This document shows, piece by piece, positions 1-38,300 of a stretch of DNA of 64,000 nucleotides. Both the position numbers and the translations under genes were made by a program. Source of the DNA: Trichoplax adhaerens (taxonomy: Eukaryota; Animalia; Placozoa); contig NW_002060950.1 of NCBI RefSeq assembly GCF_000150275.1, forward strand, positions 2,875,016 to 2,939,015, given 5' to 3'. Numbering within the stretch: the first letter of the stretch is position 1; each line of letters opens with the position of its first letter. A model generated the notes under the pieces. That model had not been told where the DNA came from, ran no database searches, and was given only the letters and a program-made list of their open reading frames with translations.

Positions 1-1855
1 TCGTGAAATCAACTTTTGTAACTGAACTGGATGAATGTATCTCTAATTTAGTGTAGTACTGAAGATGATAATAGTTACCGTTGCTTTGTTCTATTTTTTA
101 AGATTTTACACTCAAATATATACTTACGTACATAACATGGGCACTGATCCTAACAATCCATTCATCCAAGAACAAATGTCTTCCACTAGTCTAAAATATA
201 TGAAAAGGGTAAAGAAGCAGGAGAGAACTTCTGCGCCATACTCTATACTATATATACGCGTATCTCAAATATTCAAACATAATAAAAAAATGGGATCGTA
301 TAGTACACTCTGATATTTTTAACTTTGAATAGATCATGTATTTGATATTTTTTTATTTATTATCATTGACGAGACACACTTGGGTTGTCAGTTATAGAAT
401 TGGATGCACTTGAAACTTGCCAATAGACGTGATTCAACATGTTTTGATTCTTGAGAAATTATCAATTAACTCCTTTCTTGGGTTTTTCACTCATGTCAAA
501 AATTGTCATCAAAAAATACATGAAAGACTCTTTAATATATTGTTTGAAGATAACTCAGTTAATACAATAAAAAATAGAGGCTTTCTTGCATCTTAAAAAC
601 ATAGTGCATATCATAATCGATTTCTGTTGGTTGTCATGTTTTAAACTGTAACTATGCCTATTAGTTATGATTTAAGCTAGGCATGATGAAGATGTGACCA
701 TCATTAAAGCTACAGTACGTTATATCTAGTGGATATTAATCATCGCTATGTACTGTACTGTCGTATTTTGATCACAATATTATTTTCTGCAAACTATTTC
801 ATGTATTAGTAGATATTGTATTATATGGTCAAATCTATTTTTTACCATTTCAGTAAACACTTATTACTTTTACTTTCTCGTCATATTATACAAATACCAT
901 TGTAATTGATTTTATTGTCGTAATGACTCCAATTCTTAACGTCATCTGTGATCTTTTGATTGGACATAAGGCTATGAGTATATTAATGAATGTTGTTAAT
1001 ATCACTAATCCGGTAAATAAAAAAATATGAGCACAGTAGAATATGTTTAATAACGATCATTTCAACTCATGTCTTCCCATTTTAATTATTATTATCGTAT
1101 CTATATATCTTTGATTGCATTCTAGACTTGATTATTCCATGACGTTATTGAATTTATAACCGTTATTTCATGAATATGTTTTGCTTTATCGAGTTAAAAG
1201 CTTTCTACTTTAAGGAAAAAAAACAAAAAAGTAACCATATAAATGCTTCCAAAGTTTAGCAGCGCGATAAATTAGTTCGTAATTGCTACATTACCAAGCT
1301 GTCATGTAGCATCCGACAATTTGGCGCTTCGATTATGAATAGTTCATTAAAGATAAATGTGGTAGCTTGGAAATAAAAAACTATTCTCTACCAAGATGTA
1401 TAGGATACCAATTTTTTTTCTTACACGTCTATGTACAGTACTGTATAACTTCGTGTACAGTATAAACGTGTCGATCACGATGAGCATTGATTGTTACCTA
1501 CTTACAGACAGTATCATATTAATGGACACACGCAAAAAATTGAGTGTACGTGCGAATATATATTTATGCCATGTAATGTACTGTGTATAATATTGATACT
1601 CTCATGTCTTATCATAAGTTACCATTTTCGACAGTTAAATAGATGCACGTAATTGATTGATTTGGTGACTTTTCCTTTAAATAGACAGACATAATGTAGC
1701 CGTAATTACTTTATTATTATGTTTTATTATAATTATCCTAACTACTATTTACTGTATTGTCATAGAAATTGTGCACTTATCTTGTCTTGGTTGAAAAGAA
1801 ACTGAAGGTACATTAGTTTATCATTATTAAGCGACGACGTGAGTTGACCACCTCG

Positions 1856-4800
1856 ATGGAAGAAGACAATTTATCACCATTGGCTAACCATGCCGGTGCC
1901 AATTTGCCTCATTCACGATATTTAAAATCGAGGAGATTGTCGATTAGTGCTGAAGCTTGTAACTTTGATAGTGATGGCGAAGAAGAAGGATCTGGTAAAG
2001 ATTTAGTAGTGGTAAGTCATGATAAGAGTAATGCTCGCATAATCACACTGTATTAATGCATGGTCGTCATGTTGATTAATTTTCGATGACTTATCATTTT
2101 GAGTTATCAATTTTCAATTAATTTAACTAAATGATTTCTGTTAAGGCATAAAAAGTTATATAGCAATTACTGATTTATGTACAAATCATCCTGTGACTCA
2201 AATGGTTTCTGAATTTAAATGCTGTTTCCTATTCTTTTATTTCAAGTAACATTGAGAATGTACAGTACAGTACTTATAATATTGGCGAACCTTTCTGTCT
2301 GCTGTAGCTATGCATAGTAATTATAGAATTATTATTGCAGATACCGTGTTAAAATGACTATATTTGCTAACGAATTTTGAGAACTAGACGAGTATATCTA
2401 TGAGAAAATAACTTGAAGGAATAATGACATGGACATTATAGAATCTAGTGCATTTTCTGTTTTTATTTCTTTACTATTTTTTCCTATTATATAATTCTTT
2501 CGTCGTTGATAATATTCGCTATTAATTGTCGATCGACTCTTGCAGATATGAAAATATGCGTTTCAATTTCGTGACGTTTTTCAATATTGTTCACCCCGTG
2601 TAATGAAAGGACTATAGTTTATAGGCCATTATCACCGTAAAGTAGAATATAAGTTAATAAGTATTTGATATTGTGTCTTAAATACATGAACGTTACTTTA
2701 TTTAAAATCAAATTTCAAAATAACATTATCGTTGCGCTAGTTCTTATGTATCTCGCATTATTCAGCGAAGCAGTAAACTTCACTATGAACTAACCATTAA
2801 ATATCACAGTGAAACATATACATTATAAATTTCGCATCATCGTTTTATAGAGAATGCATTACAATATTACGTCCAAGTTGAGGAATTTTTGACAGAGGGC
2901 GAAAAACTACGATGTTATAATTTAGCAGATGATAAATTTCTGTACTGTGTTTCAAGGTCCCTTTAAGCAAATTTATTGTAGTGGCAGATACTATTAGCTT
3001 AATATATCCCCACTTATTGGTGTTATCATGCCGCACAATATAGTGCATACCTAGTAATGGAAAAACTTATTAATAAGTACTTCGTACTTAGTTTAGAAAT
3101 GATGACATATGGGAGTTTCAATATACCGATATTCATATTGATACTTATTGATGCAATATTGATAAAGTATGAATGATATGGATTATTGAAGACTATGACT
3201 GTTGTATCGGGTTTCTTTTTATGTCATTTTAATATCTCAATATGCCAGCACTTACCTCTTTTTCTTTCATAAATATATTGAATTGAAAGCAAATTTACAT
3301 CTTGATCGATAAAGTAAAATTCTGTCATCTTTAAGTCATTTATGTTTCATAAAGCCATTAATTAAATCATTTCTTTTTTCATTTTTTAAACGCGTTAATC
3401 TCTTGTGTGGCATACATCAAACCCGGGGGCATAAATACCGTTTTAATACTTGCAATACATTTTTGTACGATATTCTTCGACTACTGTACTATTGTTTAAA
3501 ATTATAACCCTAAACTTGTATATATTATCGTATCATATTATCGTCAATCTGTTATATCTTTTTATATTTGTAATGTTCAAAAAGACCAACATTTAAAATA
3601 TTGGAAAAATTCTTTTTGCAGTTGGTAAATTGCTTTGAATTCAGCGATTGCTATGATAACGAAGTAAAAATGATGATATACAGTATATTAAGGATAAGAC
3701 TGCAATAAATAAATAATACCGTACTTAATGCATAGGCAAAATTATAATCATCGATATTACGCTGACGAATGTGATCGTATTTTTTACAGTAGATGTTAAC
3801 AGAGTCGACATTGATACGACTTTAATACGACATTAGCACATTAGAAAGAAACCCATAGTGCATACGTACTGCGTCTTGTTTTAGGCTTTAATTCGTTAAA
3901 CAATTTCTGATGGATAAGTTAATCAGTAGAAGTTGTACAGAGTTGATAGATTTCTCGTATGTGGGATAAAGGTACTATGCCATCGATGGAAGATTTGCCA
4001 GTGTATCAAATATCTGATGTTTAATATTCAGTGATTAAAGGCTACGCTTGCGATTTTTTACGCAGTTAATGCTATTTAATTGACCTATTTGTTAATTCTA
4101 CGGTTTTACTATTTCAAAAATCAATCAGAACTAGTACAAAAATTAGCGTATATCTTTCTTTAATTATATCATATTGACGATGTTTGTAGCTTCAGCTAAC
4201 ATACCGATAAAATTTAAATTCCATGTAATATAAAAACCTTTAAATATCGTCGTTATGCAATTTAAGGTTAACAAGGAGTCGTCATGTGTATATGCTATAC
4301 CGATCAGCGATTATAAATATTATTAGATGAGATTTGTTGCTGTTGCATCATTTTGCATTCCTGCCAAAAGCAAGATCAAATCGTTAAGCTGTTGGATGAT
4401 AAAATTACGAATATAGTGCGACTTAAAATTGCAGCCTATATTGTACGTAGAGAGGCAATTTATTGTACAAATTACGGAAATGATATTGTAATGCTACACT
4501 TTATTTGGTATCTATGATCTGAAATAATTGAAATGAATTTTAGTCCTTTACACAGATGATTTATTACCGAATAGAGTATTTAGAACGAGCGACAAATTCG
4601 ATACACCCTTCTTATGTGAAATATCAAATGTATCTACTCAATTTCAATTTGTTATTGAAGAGCAGTTATTATAGGATTCCTAAAAGCAACTTAATTTAGA
4701 TGTAAATGATGTGTAATTTAATCCGTCAGTCGTCTACGGTGAAGGTGATAACTTTTTCTTATATTTTTAACTATTTATCATACCTTATTGCTAGTTATCA

Positions 4801-7687: not shown

Positions 7688-10600
7688 AATTAAGACTTCA
7701 GGACCAATTATATTATCATAATGTTGCAGCTAGTGATGCTGTTAGGGTAGGCAACCATTCCAGCTGTTTCAAATCGACCGTAGTTAGTTTTATCTACCAT
7801 AAGAAAGCGATTTTGACACCGACAACATCGACGAAAAATTTAATTTCGACAAGACTATTGGCAATTTCTCGTAAAAAATGTGTATTTGTATGTAATATCT
7901 TTGTCCTTACATGTAGTATAATTATTTTAGAAATTATCCAACGTGTGGCAATCGATTGCTGAAATTATAAAATTTCGTAGCAAATTTACATTACTTTAGA
8001 AAATATATCAAGGACATGAATTGTGCTATTATAAAGTGCATTTACGATATCAGTTGATGATCGTTGGTTTGAGGTATTAATGAGCAATTTAAGGTTTACA
8101 TACTTTGATGTTGGCCAGCTAATTATTAATGATATTTTTAGTTAGTGACTGTTGATAAAGTATTACGAGTTAAATTTACTTACCAATTGCTAAATGTCAA
8201 GTATTATATTTAATGTTTTGACTGATAAATGATACCATTAACTGCAGTATTTACATGTTAGTATCTTACTGTATACGTGTATTATTTACCAAGCAAGATG
8301 GTACAACGTGATCTAGGCACAAGACTTGGTATTATATTACACCATCATCTTGGAGCTACTTACAGTCTAGACAATGTGATGATACGCTGTAGTATCTAAC
8401 GATAACGTTTGTAACTGTAAGCCGTTGATGACAAAGATATTTTCTGGCTATTTTGTCGAGGAATGTATCTGGTTTGTGTATCATGTTTGCTGTAGTTAGT
8501 GAATGTAGCCGCTATAGTATGAGCTGGTATGAATGATTTGTTCCGGATATACAGTAGTCAGTAGTTTACGAGACAAGTTGCTATACAATCATACCAGTAT
8601 TTGTTAAGTACTAATAAAATGTAATCGAGCAAAATTGTATTGGGATATGACGGTAACATTTTCTTACTTGACCTGCTATGATGGAGTGATATATGTGGAC
8701 TACTAAAACACCAAGGACGTGACAATCTCTACGGTGAAATACCATACTGTATGAGTCCAAACTTGATACTGTACGGCGTATTATAGACTTATTGCATAAA
8801 TTAACATACAAATTGCTTCATTTTGGAATCATGCGGTAATTATGATTTCACTTTTTAGCGTTCAAATCATGAGTGAATACTGCTAATTCTAAAGCATATG
8901 AAATGCGAGTTATTAATTTAATTTCTAATTAGATTATAGCGGTAAAATGTTAAAAAGCGCTGTACATCTATTCATTGCAAAAATGAATAATAGGTTAGAA
9001 GCGTCGAACGGTATTTTTGATGGATCTTAGTCATTGGGCTGCTTTTCGTCCGACTGTCATACTAAATGCTGAGCACGCTACTAGATTTAAAGAACATAGC
9101 AATGGCACCGTTGTGAGATTCAGCATTTTGCGTACATAACGTTATGAAACTCCGTATGTTGATGTGCCCTCGATTCCCCAATCAATATGAGCATTCAGGA
9201 CTGATAGAGGTACTGTAGGAGAAAAAGCCTCACTTATACGTATATTTTCATGCATATACTCTGCCGCAGGAAGCATATATAGTAAGATAATCTACCTGTA
9301 AATTTTCTTTTAACGTACTGCTTTGTGCTGAATACGACAATTTCATTTGAACGGGAAATTAAGTAATGTATATAATTGGTCTAAAACTAAATGCAGCGGT
9401 TCTAACCCTATTACTGTACCGATAATTTCCCAACCCGCCCATTAATCCTATTGATAATTCCCCTACCCTAAAAATTATTAAAATAATTTTTTCAACAATT
9501 TTAACAAAAAATAGCTTTAACATGAATGAACTCGAAAATTAAGGTAGTACAGAGGTATAGGCTAGATGAGCATAAGCCTGCAGTGTAACTGACTGACTGT
9601 CCTGCAACAAAATCGAATTTGACAAAGGCATATAAGCATATTTTAACTCCTTAGTATGAAATTACTGTTCCATATTAGTTTCTAAAATTTACCGATAAAG
9701 ATTAAAAATGAAAATAGTGACTAGTTGATCACAAGAGTTGACCATAGATTTTACGAGTGGCTAAGGAATGCATTTAATTGTGAATCTGTCTCAAATTGCG
9801 GTTATGCTTGCTCATTATGGCTAGTGAAAACATATTTAATCTGTGATAATCATAGACTCTAATAATTAATAACTATAATGCGCGTAGTAGTAAAGTATAA
9901 TATTAAATTTAAGAAAAATCAACCGGCGACTAAGTGATCCGATACTTGTCTATCGGGTAATTAATGAAAAGGGAAACTTAATAATAATTCAAGTAAACAG
10001 TTCGCATAAATCATTGTTTTTATCAAAAGACGAATGGATTGAGAAGTAAGTTCTGGAAGATAACTTGCCTGTGCAACGGTAGCGATCTGAGCTTACACTA
10101 AATGTTGTGGCTACGTAAATAATGACCACTTGCAAGAATAAATTAGTAATTCTAAGGTTTAAAGTTAAAAATTACTTTTGATCAGATTTTAACGGTAAGA
10201 GTATAACCATGTTATTTCTTGCAATTTTTCTTTAGTTCGATAAATAAAATAAAAAAGACTACCATCAAGTGTATTATTGAGATTCACTTTATCGGTTTTG
10301 CTTAATAATTGCCAATCTGCTTGATAGCGAATGACCAATTTTTTTATTTTTCGTTACGAGCCATAGACATTAAAGATACATAATAGTTTATTGTGCAAAA
10401 ACTAATCAATGCAGCAATCAAAAGGTGTAGCATTCACTGCTGTATATGAATAGTATAAGTAACAGTGTGAAATATTTGTGATTACTAGCTACTTTTTTTA
10501 TCTAATAAATGATAATTAAAACAACAGCTTTGGTTGAAACTTTCAATTTATCGTAAGCTTGAGTCTAAAGTAAAGGCTGTAATTATTATTATAATTATAA

Positions 10601-10773: not shown

Positions 10774-11391
10774 TCAAGCACTTCTAATCCAATCATTAGA
10801 TTTTGCCTCATATGCATCGTCCCAATCGAAAGAGGTCTTTTGCTGTTGCATAGAAGTACTGATCCAATTACTCGATTTTGCTTCATACGCATCGTCCCAA
10901 TCGAAAGAGTTCTTTTGCTGTTGCAGTGAAGTGCCTGCCCAATCATTCGATTTTGCTTGATAGGCATCGTCCCAATTGAAAGAAGTCTTTTGCTGTTGTG
11001 AAACAGGCCCTACGAAAGCGTTCGATTTTCCTTGATAGGCATCATCCCAATCGAAAGAAGTCTTTTGCTGTTGTGAAGCAGGCCCTACTAAAGCGTTCGA
11101 TTTTCCTTGATAGGCATCATCCCAATCGAAAGAAGTCTTTTGCTGTTGTGAAGCAGGCCCTACTAAAGCGTTCGATTTTCCTTGATAGGCATCATCCCAA
11201 TCGAAAGAAGTCTTTTGCTGTTGTGAAGCAGGCCCTACTAAAGCGTTCGATTTTCCTTGATAGGCATCATCCCAATCGAAAGAAGTCTTTTGCTGTTGAA
11301 CAAAATTACCTAATGCAGCATGTGAAAGGTGTCTAGCAAAGCCGGTTGAAATTATGTAAGCGTACCATATAATCATTACCTTGCCCCACAT
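10774..11391 (-). CDS. Secreted repeat peptide (neuropeptide-like) precursor, 205 aa, 7 copies of QQQK(T/N)SF(D/N)WDDAY(Q/E)(G/A)K
   Basis: ATG at 11391. Signal-like N-terminus MWGKVMIIWYAYIISTGFA, then seven 25-aa units (last one 24 aa). Four units end YQ-G-K (Gly amide donor plus basic cleavage site). Single exon. Confidence 0.85.
   Translation of the reverse strand: MWGKVMIIWYAYIISTGFARHLSHAALGNFVQQQKTSFDWDDAYQGKSNALVGPASQQQKTSFDWDDAYQGKSNALVGPASQQQKTSFDWDDAYQGKSNALVGPASQQQKTSFDWDDAYQGKSNAFVGPVSQQQKTSFNWDDAYQAKSNDWAGTSLQQQKNSFDWDDAYEAKSSNWISTSMQQQKTSFDWDDAYEAKSNDWIRSA
10777..11298 (-). repeat. Coding tandem repeat, 75-bp unit x7
   Basis: The first three units are identical in protein and near-identical in DNA; the units diverge progressively toward the 3' end. 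Confidence 0.95.
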
Positions 11392-11497: not shown

Positions 11498-11505
11498 CTT
11501 ATATA
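11498..11505 (-). promoter_or_regulatory. Possible TATA box (TATATAAG) of the WDDAYQ precursor gene
   Basis: Lies about 110 bp upstream of the ATG on the coding strand. The AT-rich background makes this weak. Confidence 0.3.
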
Positions 11506-15561: not shown

Positions 15562-16080
15562 TTACCCAGAATAACTTTGAAGCAATTTAGCTAGGGGAGC
15601 ATAGCGTTGTGGATCTGTACGCATTAAAAACGTCAAAATCTGGATGATTTTATCACAACCACAGTTTGATTGGAGCAATGGGGTACCAGGTCCTCTTGAT
15701 TCAAGCAATGGTGTGCCAGGTCCTCTTGATTCAAGTAATGGGGTACCAGGTCCTCTTGATTCAAGTAATGGGGTACCAGGTCCTCTGGATTCAAGCAATG
15801 GTGTACCAGGTCCTCTGGATTCAAGCAATGGTGTACCAGGTCCTCTAGATTCAAGCAATGGTGTGCCGGGTCCTCTAGATTCAAGTAATGGGGTACCAGG
15901 TCCTCTGGATTCAAGTAATGGAGTACCAGGTCCTCTGGATTCAAGTAATGGTGTACCAGGTCCTCTGGATTCAAGCAATGGCGTGCCAGGTCCTCTCGAT
16001 TCTAGAGCAAGGGGAACTGCAAATGCAAGGTCGTGGGAAACGAGCAAAGTAACCATCAACATACACAAGAGCTTGGCCAT
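15562..16080 (-). CDS. Secreted repeat peptide precursor, 172 aa: signal peptide, 10x GPGTPLLESR + 1x GPGTPLL, Cys-containing tail ending in Gly
   Basis: Signal peptide MAKLLCMLMVTLLVSHDLAFA (A-F-A cleavage motif), pro-piece VPLALESR, repeats invariant in protein with only synonymous DNA variation, and a unique C-terminus QSNCGC...LLQSYSG-stop. Confidence 0.85.
   Translation of the reverse strand: MAKLLCMLMVTLLVSHDLAFAVPLALESRGPGTPLLESRGPGTPLLESRGPGTPLLESRGPGTPLLESRGPGTPLLESRGPGTPLLESRGPGTPLLESRGPGTPLLESRGPGTPLLESRGPGTPLLESRGPGTPLLQSNCGCDKIIQILTFLMRTDPQRYAPLAKLLQSYSG
15673..15993 (-). repeat. Coding tandem repeat, 30-bp unit x ~10.7
   Basis: Plus-strand unit GATTCAAG(C/T)AATGGNGTRCCRGGTCCTCTN repeated head to tail. 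Confidence 0.95.
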
Positions 16081-19470: not shown

Positions 19471-22400
19471 TTATTTCTTTACGTAAGAACTATAATGCCT
19501 TAAGGCAGCTAGACTGTCTTGTAATGGATTTAAGTCACCATCTGTGTCTTTGGTATCATTAATTCGCTTTGCATATCCTCGCATTATCAACGTGTTTTCG
19601 ATTTTGATAAGCGATGATTCTTTGGTGACTTGTAACTGAACATCATACGTACCGTCGTTAGATATCGAAATAAATCTGGCTTTTAAGTTTCCTAAAGTAA
19701 CTAAATTCCGAAAGGAGGAGATTGATTCCGTATTCCATTCGCCGTCTTGCAGCGTTCCTATACATTTATGAAGGCTACATTGCATGGCTAACGGAGGTAC
19801 AGGATCGGATTCATTATAATTTGCTCCAATATCTGCAAGACTAATACAATCAGTGGTACCATAGTCAATATTGAGCACAGCTGCTTGCTTATTTGGAAGA
19901 AGTCTCATGATAAGACCACGATACCACCCACTACTTTGGGTGCCAATAAAGTATATCTTTCCAACAGAAATACCTTTGTGCCCAACTGTTTGCATAGCCA
20001 CCTTCATGTTTTCTAGATAATGTTTATTCATTTGTCCAGTTTCATCACAACAATGCAACCAAAATAATCCTGGATTGATAATATTAGTAACTTCCACTTT
20101 AATTAGATTCTCAGAAGATAGTAGATTAGCTTGATTTATAGGTAATAATGATTCTTTTATCATTCTGTGGAAGCTATGGATCTTACAAAGAAATCTATGA
20201 GAATCCCAGTTTAACTTACACAGATTTTTCTCAACTAATATTCGATTAATATTAGTTAAGCCATTCTCATTATTAACAAATAAATCAATATGATAGTTGT
20301 ATTCATCTCGTAAAATTATTTTTGCTTTTAATAAGACGTTTACATTTAAAACTAATCCTTTAAACCAATCAACTATATCAGGGACCCAGCTTTCACAATT
20401 ATCTGGATTGGTAATTCCATATAACGTGCAAGGATAGATGGAAGCATAGGATTGTGCAACTGATTTGAACAAGGGTTTAATTTCGTTCAAATCAATAGTT
20501 TGCACAATCCCTTCATCAACACAGTGTATTTCAGCATTCTCGTTACCAATAGTATCAATTATTACGCGACGCCAATGTTCGGCAAAAAATGCACTATAAG
20601 CTTTGCCACATGATAGCTCATTGATATTAACAGACCTGACGTTCTTGCTGTATCTTTTGTCCATAAGATCTCTTATGTCACTATATTGTTGTATTTCACG
20701 ATCAGGTTCCAACGATTTGACTAGAAAATAGTTTGGGTTTACAACATCGGTAATAGCTATGTCTATTGTTGCACTGACTACTAGTTCCTCATAACTTAAT
20801 GAATCAATACATTCGTTATCGGTATCTGTACTTGCCTCTTCGAGATTATTGTTACGATTACTTAATATAGGTACATTGGTAGATGCAGTATTTTGACCTC
20901 GAGTTGAGATATTATGGTCCTCCGTTTCTATAATATTTTTGTCCATTGATGGAACAGTTTCTTTCAAGTTAGGGTGTCCAGATGCTGCTGATAGTGAGCT
21001 CTGGGTATTGCTCAACTGTTCACTTGTTGAGCGAATAGATTGTAATTGATTATCCGTAATATCCAATTGTAGCATTGTAAACTCTTTTACTTTGTCTTTA
21101 GCCATTAATATGTTGCGAAGAAATTCCGAATTTTCAACGTTGAGAAAGGCATAACGACTTCTACTCACTTGCTCATTTAAACTTTCTTGTAAATTATCAG
21201 GTAAAAAGATAATAACTTCAATTTGATTGCTAAATTTTTCATCAATAACAACGGCATATAAATGCGAGGCTGTATCGAGAAGTGCAGCAAGATGTCTTTT
21301 GCCTTCGATTCTTGCACTACCATCTAATGTATCTGTTCCGTAAAGCTTAAATGGATAAGGACCAGATTGTGTGTAATGTAAATATTCAGGCAGTTTATAG
21401 AGAGAATTTAGGTTTACATTCTGGATACTACCACCAGAATCTATGAAAGCTACAGTAGTGACAGTATCCAACGCTAGCACACGTACTCTATGCAGTTTGT
21501 TTGTAACCACGCCATATATTCGACCTACTTTAACTTCGTTACTATTTATTTTTACCCAACATTTCGATGGGTATATAGAACCGACAATATCACCCAGCTT
21601 GAAAGCCTCAGAACTAATTTTTCCCCAAAAGGAACATCCGTCATTACACCAGGTAGCAGCTAGTGGAAGTACCATGCTATCTTTATTCGAGCTATTAATT
21701 GTGGGATAATTAAAGTCGTTATATGATAGATTGTCGTGAACATGAGGATCAACACTTTTATTGTTATTTCCAGTTGTAGCTCTGGATAAGGCAATTTTCT
21801 TTTTGGGAGAATGCCTTGCTTTATTACTAGGCGCTTCATCATTCGAAAACAACGAATTGTTAGTATCTGACGTTTGGTGTGCATCGACAGTGCTTCTTTC
21901 CATACTTCGGTGTTTACTGGATGTTTTACGGTGATCGATCTTTCGTACATCAGATGTTGAAGATTCGTAGCTACTAGAATCTGGATATCCATCGTTGATA
22001 CTAGATGAACGCAAGCTTCTTGTTATACTATCAGTAATATCTTCAGAGGTCAATTTGCCGTCAATTTGACTATCAACTTGCTTTGCATCCTTATTTAAAG
22101 GAGTATTATTTAAGTCACGCCTTGCATCGATAGATTTGCCTGCAATATAAATTTATAAGATAGCAAGATTTAGCATAAGAATTGCCGAATGCAGTTCAAG
22201 TATCACAATTTAAATCACAACTTACTAGATGCATTAATTAACACAGACGATCGCCAAGAGGTATTGTTTCTGGTATTTGTGTCACTTTCCATTTCATCTA
22301 CTTGTACATTATTTGTAAAATTTTTTGCAGAACTGTTAGATAGGCTCATTTCTGAAGCAAATCTGCTTAAAAATTTCTCAAATACACGATGTAATTTTTC

Positions 22401-35333: not shown

Positions 35334-38300
35334 TCAACTTGAATACACTATGTATTCTGGGTAAGCAGCGTTATCGTGAAATACCACAAAAACAGAGTCA
35401 TTATTTTCGTTACGAACTGAATGGAGATTTATAGTCTGGCTGCCTTGTATGGTACCTAAATTGGGTTGACTTCTTTCGGCTGGTTCTCCGAAAATACCTG
35501 TCAAAACGCGTGCTATTATAATCACTGGACCATATACTTTAGCTACTTCAGCACTTTGGGTAAAATAAGTTCCAATACCCAGTGCTGCACCTGATTAGAA
35601 AGAAAAATTCCGTCAGCATAAATTATGTTATTGCTATGAGATCGAATCGATATCAGCTATGTTTGTCTATTATGTACCATTAGATTTTCCTGAATAATCT
35701 CTGTTAAATCCTGCTTGGCAAATTCTATCGATAAAATTAAGCTGGGTACCATGAAATAATTGCCTTTCTACAATCGTCCCTGGCTGATATTCATCAACTA
35801 TTTTAGCTACATCCATCTTCATTAATTGATAGCGTTGATATAAATTCCAATTTTGTACTCGTTCCACTTGTGTTACTTCGATATTACTATTTCCTAGTAG
35901 ACTATAAATTTCTGCTAATTCTATTGCAGTGGTTATTTCTACTCGATTCTTTCTTCCGTCTTGGATCTCATTAATATTGTCGTATTCCCAGTCGCCAGGT
36001 ACACTTATGCAGTCTACTTATAGTAGTTGGCAGAAAAAAGAAAGAATATATTTTTTGAATATGATAACATTTACATGTATCGCATAATTGCACAGAATTT
36101 ATAGTAAAATAAATTGAATTTATACCTGGATAATTTTTTCTAATTACATATGTACGATTGCTATTTTGCAATGTCAGATTCATCTGTTCAAAATTAACCA
36201 CCTTGAGTTCACCACCTATACAAGCCGTTTGACAAAACTTCTTGTCTTTTTGATAAAGTTGGTAATATTTTTCAATTTCGTAATTTAATTTTTCGTCAAA
36301 TGGATAATAAGAATGACCTATTTTCATCTGCCATGGTGCTATTTCATACGTAAATTGTTGCAATGTATGACTAGCTTTCTCTTGTAAATTGCGTTGTATT
36401 TTTTGATAGAGATCTATTATCGTACAACAAACATCTTCACTAATGCCATATATGGTAATAAATGAATATTCTTGGCTAGATTCTTTAATTAAGACGGTGC
36501 CATATTTATTCCACATATTTAATTTCAAGCTGATCCAACTGTGATCTTCTAAATTTGTAAGGTGTTCAACATCTGTCAGTGTTTTGCATGCCAACGATGG
36601 CATCAGTTTATACATTTTCGATTTTATCCGTCGGATAGTTTCACGATCTTTTGCTGCAATTGCAATATCAATATCTAATGGCTTACAACAATAATCTTGA
36701 AAAATGATCCATTTATAATATGAAGTAGAGCTACAATTAATCATTCGATTTCGTATCCATCTTGTCATTTCCAGGCATCGATACCAGTTAATCATGACAA
36801 ATTCAAGGCGTTGCAGGTTCTTCGTTAAATGCTGTTGTTGCACAAATTCTTCAATTTTACTTATTAGTAAGCCAATATTCTTCTCATCTGTTTCATTTCC
36901 AAGAAATGGGATTGCTAAAGAGCTTACTTTAGCTCTGTTAACGTAATTTAACAAAGCATCAAAGTTTTCCAGCATTCCATATGGGCATGCCTTAATTACG
37001 ATTGGGTCTTGAGAACAAATACTAACTCCATGCAGTCCTTGAGGCAACGACTGATTACTATTGCAATCAGATCCATGAAATTGGAAATTAACTGCGTAGC
37101 CATCTAGATGACTTGCACAAATTTCTATTAAAGATAATAAAGCTTTTGCATGGGAATGTTGGATTGATCCCTTGTAAATATCAAGAATTAATATCTGCTG
37201 ATCTTTAATACAACATCTTGCGGAATAAAGTAGAGTCAATTTACCACCATTTCCTTCGTTCCGGATAGCTTTTGATTTTATTGCGTTATTAATAAGATCT
37301 ATTTCTGATTTTACATTAAGTAAAGCTTGCCTAAAGGCAGTATGATGATCGTTTAATGAGACAGTAACATAAATAGTCTTTAAACTAGTTTTAAGCGAAT
37401 TTTGAAGGGCAAATTCCTTAGCAGCATCGATCATTCCTCGAGCAACCTCCTGGATATGGAGGCCCACATTCCCAGCTCCAATTGGAGGTATCGCAATAGA
37501 TGTCATTAAATTGTCGTGAGCTATTTTGATACACTGATTAATTTTGTCAATAAGCCACTTAAATAGAAGAGAAAGAAAATAATAAATGAGCCAACTCTGA
37601 AATTTGTACGACTCAGTAAGCAAAGTGATAAATCATTATTTATAATAGAATAGTATTTAGTTACTATTATATCTACCGGTAATTTTCTGTTTGAGCTTAG
37701 AAATGGAATATGATAAACTGCCTTGCTTTGAAAATAACTACCATCCGTTATACCAATCTTGTCTAGTGTTAATTCTGCTAGATTTGTATCGCAGTCATTT
37801 TGGTAGGCTTGGCCACCTGCGCGATATAATAATTTTGCAAGTTTCCCTACACTGTAAGATCCGAGCTCTATAGAGTTTATAATGACATCTGCCTATAATT
37901 GGATATTTAGTTTAGCAATCCTGTAGTGGTATAAGAGTTATTATTGACTTTACTATATGTAAATATTAGCTTCATCTTAAAAGCAACTAACTTTAATCTT
38001 TTCCAGGGCTCCGCGAACGATTTTAATAGTGATTTCGTTAATTTTGATTTCATCAAGGGTGTTTCCCAATTTCGATTCAGCAGCCTTTTCTAATCTAGTT
38101 ATCAAAAAGTTATCATGGCAATATTTGATAGTGATGTTGATGCAGTTCAACGAACAAGGCTGGTAATGATTAATAATTCTAATTGTAAATTTAAAAATCC
38201 TATTTCTAGTAGCAGCAGATTTGACTTGAATTCATGCTGTAATTACCTATTTTGGATTTTGAATAGTTCATGCTTTATGGATATCCTAGATGTTAATAAA

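Follow-up and report, generated by a model that had tools for sequence, protein, structure and literature searches.

A single-exon Trichoplax gene with seven tandem acidic-aromatic units, a candidate secreted propeptide

A single-exon gene of Trichoplax adhaerens encodes a 205-residue protein in which a signal-like N-terminus is followed by seven tandem units, each bearing a conserved acidic-aromatic core between single lysines. Judging from these sequence features, we hold with moderate confidence that the gene encodes a lineage-restricted secreted propeptide, from which cleavage at the conserved lysines would release short peptides of acidic-aromatic character. The gene lies within a 64,000-nucleotide stretch of the H1 genome (contig NW_002060950.1), which is referred to here as the window. 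As far as we have checked, the gene is present in databases as an unnamed model and is undescribed as a peptide precursor. Its features, in window coordinates, are as follows.

10774 to 11391, minus strand: complete single-exon coding sequence of 205 codons, with the TGA stop at 10774-10776; matched by the annotation of Trichoplax sp. H2
11335 to 11391, minus strand: putative signal peptide, residues 1-19 (n-region MWGK, h-region VMIIWYAYII, c-region STGFA)
11299 to 11334, minus strand: N-terminal propiece outside the repeats, residues 20-31 (RHLSHAALGNFV), 12 residues
10999 to 11298, minus strand: repeat units 1-4 (type A), residues 32-131, built as QQQK + TSFDWDDAYQ + GK + spacer
10777 to 10998, minus strand: repeat units 5-7 (type B), residues 132-205, with Ala instead of Gly and diverged spacers
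11498 to 11505, minus strand: candidate TATA box (TATATAAG), 114 nt 5′ of the ATG; a sequence match, unchanged in H2
10387 to 10392, minus strand: candidate polyadenylation signal AATAAA, about 380 nt past the stop; likewise a sequence match

Layout of the gene and its repeat units

The open reading frame starts at an ATG with A at -3, its hydrophobic N-terminus is encoded by the non-repeat 5′ part of the gene, and the stop codon follows directly after the last repeat unit. Within the putative signal region, assessed heuristically, an n-region containing Lys precedes a 10-residue h-region of moderate hydrophobicity with many Trp and Tyr residues (the highest Kyte-Doolittle mean over an 11-residue span is 1.96, for residues 5-15), and a putative cleavage site before Arg20 has Gly at -3 and Ala at -1. 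A typical membrane anchor would need a longer hydrophobic stretch than these 10-15 residues. Apart from residues 4, 20 and 203, Lys and Arg are confined to two conserved sites per unit, and the protein is therefore without a dibasic site. The mature region is acidic (pI 4.6, 22 Asp, 10 Trp), contains no Cys and no Ser/Thr/Pro-rich tracts, and has a net charge of about -1 per unit. No Pfam domain was found in the product, and the ESM Atlas model of the exact sequence is of low confidence (pLDDT 0.58), which agrees with what is expected of a propeptide; the Atlas likewise gave no feature match, and the structural neighbours of so uncertain a model are meaningless. A paralogue search of the same genome returned the self-match only, and the gene is thus single-copy.

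Tandem Repeats Finder reported a period of 75 bp at 10799-11298, with 91% matches over 6.7 copies and without indels, and the translation of this repeat gives seven in-frame 25-residue units. These follow the formula QQQK, then [T/N]SF[D/N]WDDAY[Q/E], then [G/A]K, then a variable spacer of nine residues. An earlier note on this DNA had described a signal peptide and seven units flanked by single lysines; the units are confirmed by reading of the open frame and by Tandem Repeats Finder, and the start looks signal-like by the heuristic. That note had also made all seven units TSFDWDDAYQG-K, which holds for units 1-4: the exact TSFDWDDAYQ-G-K is confined to these, where Gly-Lys is a possible amidation signal. 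The cores of units 5, 6 and 7 read TSFNWDDAYQ-AK, NSFDWDDAYE-AK and TSFDWDDAYE-AK, thus ending in YQAK, YEAK and YEAK and bearing T/N and D/N changes. The type A spacer is SNALVGPAS in units 1-3 and SNAFVGPVS in unit 4, and the array ends in the C-terminal tail SNDWIRSA. The QQQK codons are the same in all seven copies, and the residue before QQQ varies among Val, Ser, Leu and Met.

Units 1-3 are identical in DNA sequence and unit 4 differs from them by 2 nt, so that amplification or homogenisation of the array is recent. Units 5-7 have diverged from units 1-4 and among themselves, and in these type B units the changes are mostly synonymous in the core and mostly non-synonymous in the spacer. 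Indeed, pN/pS is 0.18 in the 12-codon core versus 0.65 in the spacer, with synonymous core changes at codons 1, 6, 8 and 10, and the constraint on the core is also present among the Gly-less units 5-7. As in peptide precursors, therefore, several copies of a short conserved peptide (here seven) alternate with less conserved spacers; another precursor hallmark, a Gly before a basic residue, is found in units 1-4 only, and the same 4+3 pattern recurs in H2.

In Trichoplax sp. H2 a single-exon gene for a 205-aa protein is annotated at the syntenic place (GCA_003344405.1, NOWV01000056.1 complement 385,891-386,508; L002:26020-26637), the H1 coding sequence being at 2,885,789-2,886,406 of its scaffold. 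That annotation was made by the evidence-based MAKER pipeline with transcript evidence, and it provides indirect support for transcription, short of proof. The two genomes differ at 4 of 1218 aligned bases, all within units 3 and 4 (window 10999-11150), and from H1 to H2 the resulting changes are Asp to Asn twice, Leu to Phe, and Ala to Val. Since these changes make units 3-4 copies of neighbouring unit types, they point to conversion or unequal exchange within the array. As a result, the ratio of Asp-type to Asn-type amidatable copies is 4:0 in H1 and 2:2 in H2. Genome-wide, H1 and H2 are 99.1% identical, so their comparison is uninformative on long-term conservation.

Candidate products and known precursors

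If the gene encodes a secreted propeptide, its product would lack a stable fold and would lose the signal peptide near Ala19. Cleavage of the prohormone would then fall at both invariant lysines of every 25-residue unit, followed by removal of these lysines, so that a single copy of the conserved acidic-aromatic core is released per unit. Four of the H1 copies have a terminal Gly and could be converted by PAM to TSFDWDDAYQ-amide; the other three, with the ends ...DDAYQA or ...DDAYEA, would remain free acids. Thus amidation via Gly-Lys, as put forward in the earlier note, may apply to four of the seven units; the other three have no Gly, and in H2 two of the four carry Asn. The mature peptides would act as diffusible regulatory (neuropeptide-like) signals.

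The residues before QQQ are variable, which leaves the lysines as the only invariant candidate endoproteolytic sites. The invariant QQQK could nevertheless be the mature N-terminus (pyroGlu-QQK-TSFDWDDAYQ-amide) rather than a cleavage signal, and a product in which QQQK is kept in this way, pyroGlu-QQKTSFDWDDAYQ-amide, is as plausible as the Lys-trimmed core. Calculated [M+H]+ values are 1246.501 for the 10-mer amide, 1741.745 for the pyroGlu 14-mer amide, 1317.538, 1332.502 and 1319.506 for the cores of units 5-7 as free acids, and 1199.602 for the spacer peptide, the uncut protein being of about 20 kDa. A pyroGlu start is typical of placozoan and cnidarian peptides, and an internal single Lys can persist in them, as in pQANLKSIFG-amide; by mass spectrometry (MS), one or two internal Lys are seen to be retained in the pyroGlu peptides QANLKSIFG and QAKKSFHFVEN. 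According to Najle et al. 2023, the peptidergic cells of placozoans contain transcripts for prohormone convertase, carboxypeptidases, PAM and glutaminyl cyclase, and the enzymes for either route therefore exist.

Both flanks of the core are invariant monobasic Lys, with no dibasic site and no upstream basic residue. A monobasic Lys that has nothing basic at P4, P6 or P8 is unfavourable for cleavage by convertases. The processing sites of the placozoan precursors that we checked are the following.

YYamide precursor: G-KK or G-RK; located in the same genome
PWN precursor: KR; located in the same genome
MFPF precursor: K then K or R, from MS flanks
SIFGamide and FFNPamide precursors: G-KR
PRWamide (RWamide) precursor: monobasic G-R, with the N-terminus formed from Asp/Asn-Gln to pyroGlu

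Monobasic Lys on both flanks is thus atypical among these precursors, which lowers our confidence in a TSFDWDDAYQ-amide product; the placozoan precedent for monobasic processing is RWamide, with ...PRWGR followed by D or N. Moreover, constraint on the core extends to the units that cannot be amidated, so that selection does not obviously act on the amide. The PWN precursor region (L010, G000:C1403:665343-668369, minus strand) consists of many very short, similar exon-like blocks that end in ...(D)IPWN-KR or ...VPWN-KR, with stop-containing sequence between them, an architecture very unlike the single-exon arrays of the window.

Among known systems, the YYamide precursor (predicted DYDDYYY-amide) resembles the seven-unit gene in that both belong to the same animal, carry a signal peptide or signal-like segment and tandem acidic units rich in Tyr or other aromatic residues with C-terminal Gly, have no folded domain, and are lineage-restricted. 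However, in the YYamide precursor the Gly of a unit is followed by a dibasic KK or RK that delimits it, the YYamide gene has at least two exons, and there is no sequence similarity between the two; YYamide has been localised with antibodies and tested by bath application, whereas the gene described here is known from sequence. Precursors of the PRWamide/SIFGamide/Antho-RFamide type share with it the many near-identical copies and the Gly followed by a basic residue (monobasic in PRWamide). In these the N-terminus arises from a cyclising Gln rather than from a basic site, a scheme that the invariant QQQK would fit, and pQANLKSIFG-amide illustrates that an internal single Lys is tolerated. In that type, however, Gln follows Asp, Glu or Asn, whereas here it follows Ser, Leu, Met or Val; Gly is followed by Arg or KR rather than by a lone Lys; and the arrays have no long variable spacer, in contrast to the nine-residue spacer and the three of seven units without Gly found here. 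The likeness to cholecystokinin, gastrin and sulfakinin is general only, namely acidic residues ahead of Tyr, a Trp, and a possible C-terminal amide, and the repeat gene has neither W-M-D-F-amide nor -H-M-R-F-amide, nor the single-copy architecture and dibasic sites of that family.

Tyrosine sulfation, which had been suggested from the acidic residues ahead of Tyr, is unsupported. A genome-wide search with Pfam Sulfotransfer_3 (PF13469), the family that includes tyrosylprotein sulfotransferase (TPST), detected no TPST, the search having been made exon by exon, such that a multi-exon TPST could escape it; the single match in the genome is a heparan-sulfate N-deacetylase/N-sulfotransferase (NDST) by Pfam and PDB comparison. 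A relationship to cholecystokinin or sulfakinin was accordingly rejected, there being no C-terminal motif, no homology and no TPST detected. The NDST gene itself (L012, G000:C1407:1672670-1676011; ORF 1018-3273, minus strand) is apparently intron-less and encodes 751 aa, which match human NDST1 structures at 1e-124.

The earlier note had allowed that the peptide might already be among predicted placozoan peptides and had looked to MS for processed forms, and neither was found in the sources compared. Table S5 of Najle et al. 2023 (400 H2 MS peptides, 333 H13 peptides and 60 curated peptides) contains no SFDW, DWDD, DAYQ, DAYE or LVGPAS anywhere in sheets a-c, so that no processed peptide of this gene is in the published H2 peptidome; likewise, none of the 60 curated neuropeptides in the docking table of that study matches the gene, and the supplement of Mayorova 2025 holds no match to the peptide. 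It is thus in none of the placozoan lists compared, a set that stops short of Nikitin 2015, Jekely 2013 and Sebe-Pedros 2018; the first of these comprises twelve preprohormones according to Hauser et al. 2022, who do not itemise them. To enter Table S5, a candidate gene had to reach an expression of 50-fold or higher in the peptidergic metacells of two or more species. Literature searches with the core, the amide names and fragments as strings retrieved no relevant paper. Detection by positive-ion MS is difficult for an amidated peptide that contains three Asp and lacks any basic residue. Because of the gene filter and this poor ionisation of acidic peptides, absence from the H2 peptidome is only mild negative evidence.

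In sum, the secreted-propeptide reading is supported by the signal-like segment, the lack of a Pfam domain, the Lys at conserved positions and the low pLDDT, and it is weakened by the lack of a dibasic site, the Gly-less units with a conserved core, the missing peptidome match, the only moderately hydrophobic h-region, and a conservation seen solely between the near-identical H1 and H2, the homologue searches having found nothing further. The neuropeptide-like precursor envisaged earlier accordingly stands in part: the architecture, the lack of a domain or transmembrane segment and the placozoan origin agree with it, but the exclusively monobasic Lys and the absence of any peptide from the H2 peptidome table do not. 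More tentatively, the gene may represent an unrecognised family of placozoan signalling peptides that are acidic, contain Trp and Tyr, are partly amidated, and are released by a Lys-specific monobasic route. Such a route would depart from the dibasic or Gly-Arg processing of every placozoan precursor characterised so far, and its products would have been missed by peptidomics because of poor positive-mode ionisation and prediction filters for a dibasic N-flank.

Clearly less probable than the secreted propeptide, in our judgement, is a secreted repeat protein that works intact, for example as a multivalent ligand of acidic-aromatic type, in the binding of cations or mineral, or within matrix or mucus. 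Its seven FDWDDAY motifs would be binding sites and its lysines structural or charge-balancing. Conservation of the core with or without a Gly after it would be expected of such a protein, as would the absence of dibasic sites and of any peptide from the published peptidome, and the acidic, Trp-rich mature region described above would suit it. Yet the regular alternation of core-Lys and spacer-Lys with a fast-evolving spacer is the classic pattern of a precursor, four Gly-Lys sites are present, and the protein offers neither Cys, a folded domain nor Ser/Thr/Pro-rich tracts, and only a small net charge per unit.

Reading frame and search for relatives

Across the units, the minus-strand frame of the repeat ORF is the only one of six that is free of stops, and pN/pS between units is lowest in this frame (0.48), compared with 0.58 to 1.43 in the other frames, all of which contain stops. 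Two further frames are open in part, over 112 aa and 72 aa, and an open frame over a tandem repeat is for this reason weak evidence when taken alone. From the sequence comparisons between units, the reading frame looks real.

Searches for relatives returned little. A word-indexed protein search with the full ORF matched nothing, and a HMMER scan of 1.84 billion representative proteins gave no homologue at E below 1e-6. Six weak matches were obtained in that scan, the best with an E-value of 3.5e-6. They come from a diatom, from Suillus fungi, from a metagenome region that is phage-like and from an environmental contig coding for a secreted protein; all are repeat proteins of unrelated kinds and were rejected as homologues. 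Two of the six carry look-alike motifs, SFSGDDAY and F-x-W-D-[DE]-A-[FL], and the genomic contexts of both indicate convergence. One is a 205-aa protein without a signal peptide, encoded in a phage-like metagenome region (L004:5001-5618) among small genes of Arc and HTH type, which has five spaced F-x-W-D-[DE]-A-[FL] motifs; we take its likeness to the FDWDDAY core to be convergence. Look-ups of the exact H1 and H2 products found the H2 genome record only, and no transcript-derived contig. Among placozoan proteins in the searched collections, a control query with a Tudor protein recovered H1 and H2 only, so that the Hoilungia and Cladtertia proteomes seem to be missing from them. The gene is probably restricted to its lineage, a statement whose scope is Trichoplax H1 and H2 and which depends on these sequence searches.

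Against this background, it is improbable that the array is a minisatellite left open in one frame by chance, its gene model being an annotation artefact with no protein behind it. Tandem repeats do easily stay open, as the two partly open frames illustrate, and the identical units 1-3 give no independent evidence; in addition, no homologues were found, and the product is missing from a collection of 15 billion proteins searched by exact look-up. However, in the diverged units 4-7 stops are missing from the ORF frame only, where pN/pS is also lowest and falls furthest in the core; the unique 5′ part supplies a well-placed ATG and a signal-like segment, with a stop right behind the last unit; and the evidence-based MAKER annotation of H2 retained the model. 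We give hardly any credence to a membrane-anchored cytosolic scaffold in which FDWDD would serve as a W-acidic motif for kinesin light chain TPR domains (cf. calsyntenin, SKIP), for although the hydrophobic-acidic-W-D-D of the core may fit the W-acidic consensus, and seven copies would make it multivalent, the sole hydrophobic segment is N-terminal, short (10-15 residues) and more positive on its N-side flank, which predicts a cleaved signal or a lumenal C-terminus and thus repeats that do not face the cytosol, and the nearest database look-alikes, the phage-region protein and the environmental secreted protein, are convergent low-complexity matches.

Meaning for placozoan peptide biology, and neighbouring genes

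Placozoans coordinate behaviour without neurons by means of secreted peptides, and each new precursor is a possible further channel. The seven-unit gene is a useful candidate in this field. Proposals of precursor genes in placozoans already number more than 50, so that one further candidate restricted to Trichoplax is an incremental addition. If the secreted propeptide is confirmed, the repertoire would gain a strongly acidic class of peptides, and single-lysine processing, which current filters exclude by demanding a dibasic N-flank plus a Gly-basic C-flank, would be in use. Amidated and non-amidated versions of one core could then be compared within one precursor.

Another repeat gene with a single exon is found on the same strand, 4.2 kb upstream of the seven-unit gene (window 15562-16080, minus strand). 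It combines a signal-like N-terminus with 11 contiguous copies of GPGTPLLESR and a 40-residue Cys-containing tail, and it too is annotated in H2 (172 aa, L002:21327-21845). GPGTPLLESR is missing from Table S5 of Najle et al. 2023 and from full-text literature searches, and Pfam gave for this gene only a sub-threshold match to the Spt5 CTD repeat. Like the seven-unit gene, it has a single exon, a signal-like N-terminus and tandem short units that end in one basic residue; unlike it, it has no spacer, no Gly-basic amidation signal and a Cys in its tail, and the two sequences are unrelated. A comparison of the upstream regions of both genes for common motifs yielded nothing convincing.

Further along the window, a Tudor-domain gene has a large exon at 19471-22053 (minus strand). 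The exon product matches the H2 'Tudor domain-containing protein 1', a protein of 1487 aa with RRM and Tudor domains, at 100% identity, and TRIADDRAFT_58757 at 98%. The gene model in H1 is 176 residues shorter than that in H2, so that the two annotations differ. Finally, an ORF at 35971-37623, also on the minus strand, has weak Macro and WWE matches, and its syntenic gene in H2 is annotated as a 1168-aa Macro plus PARP protein.
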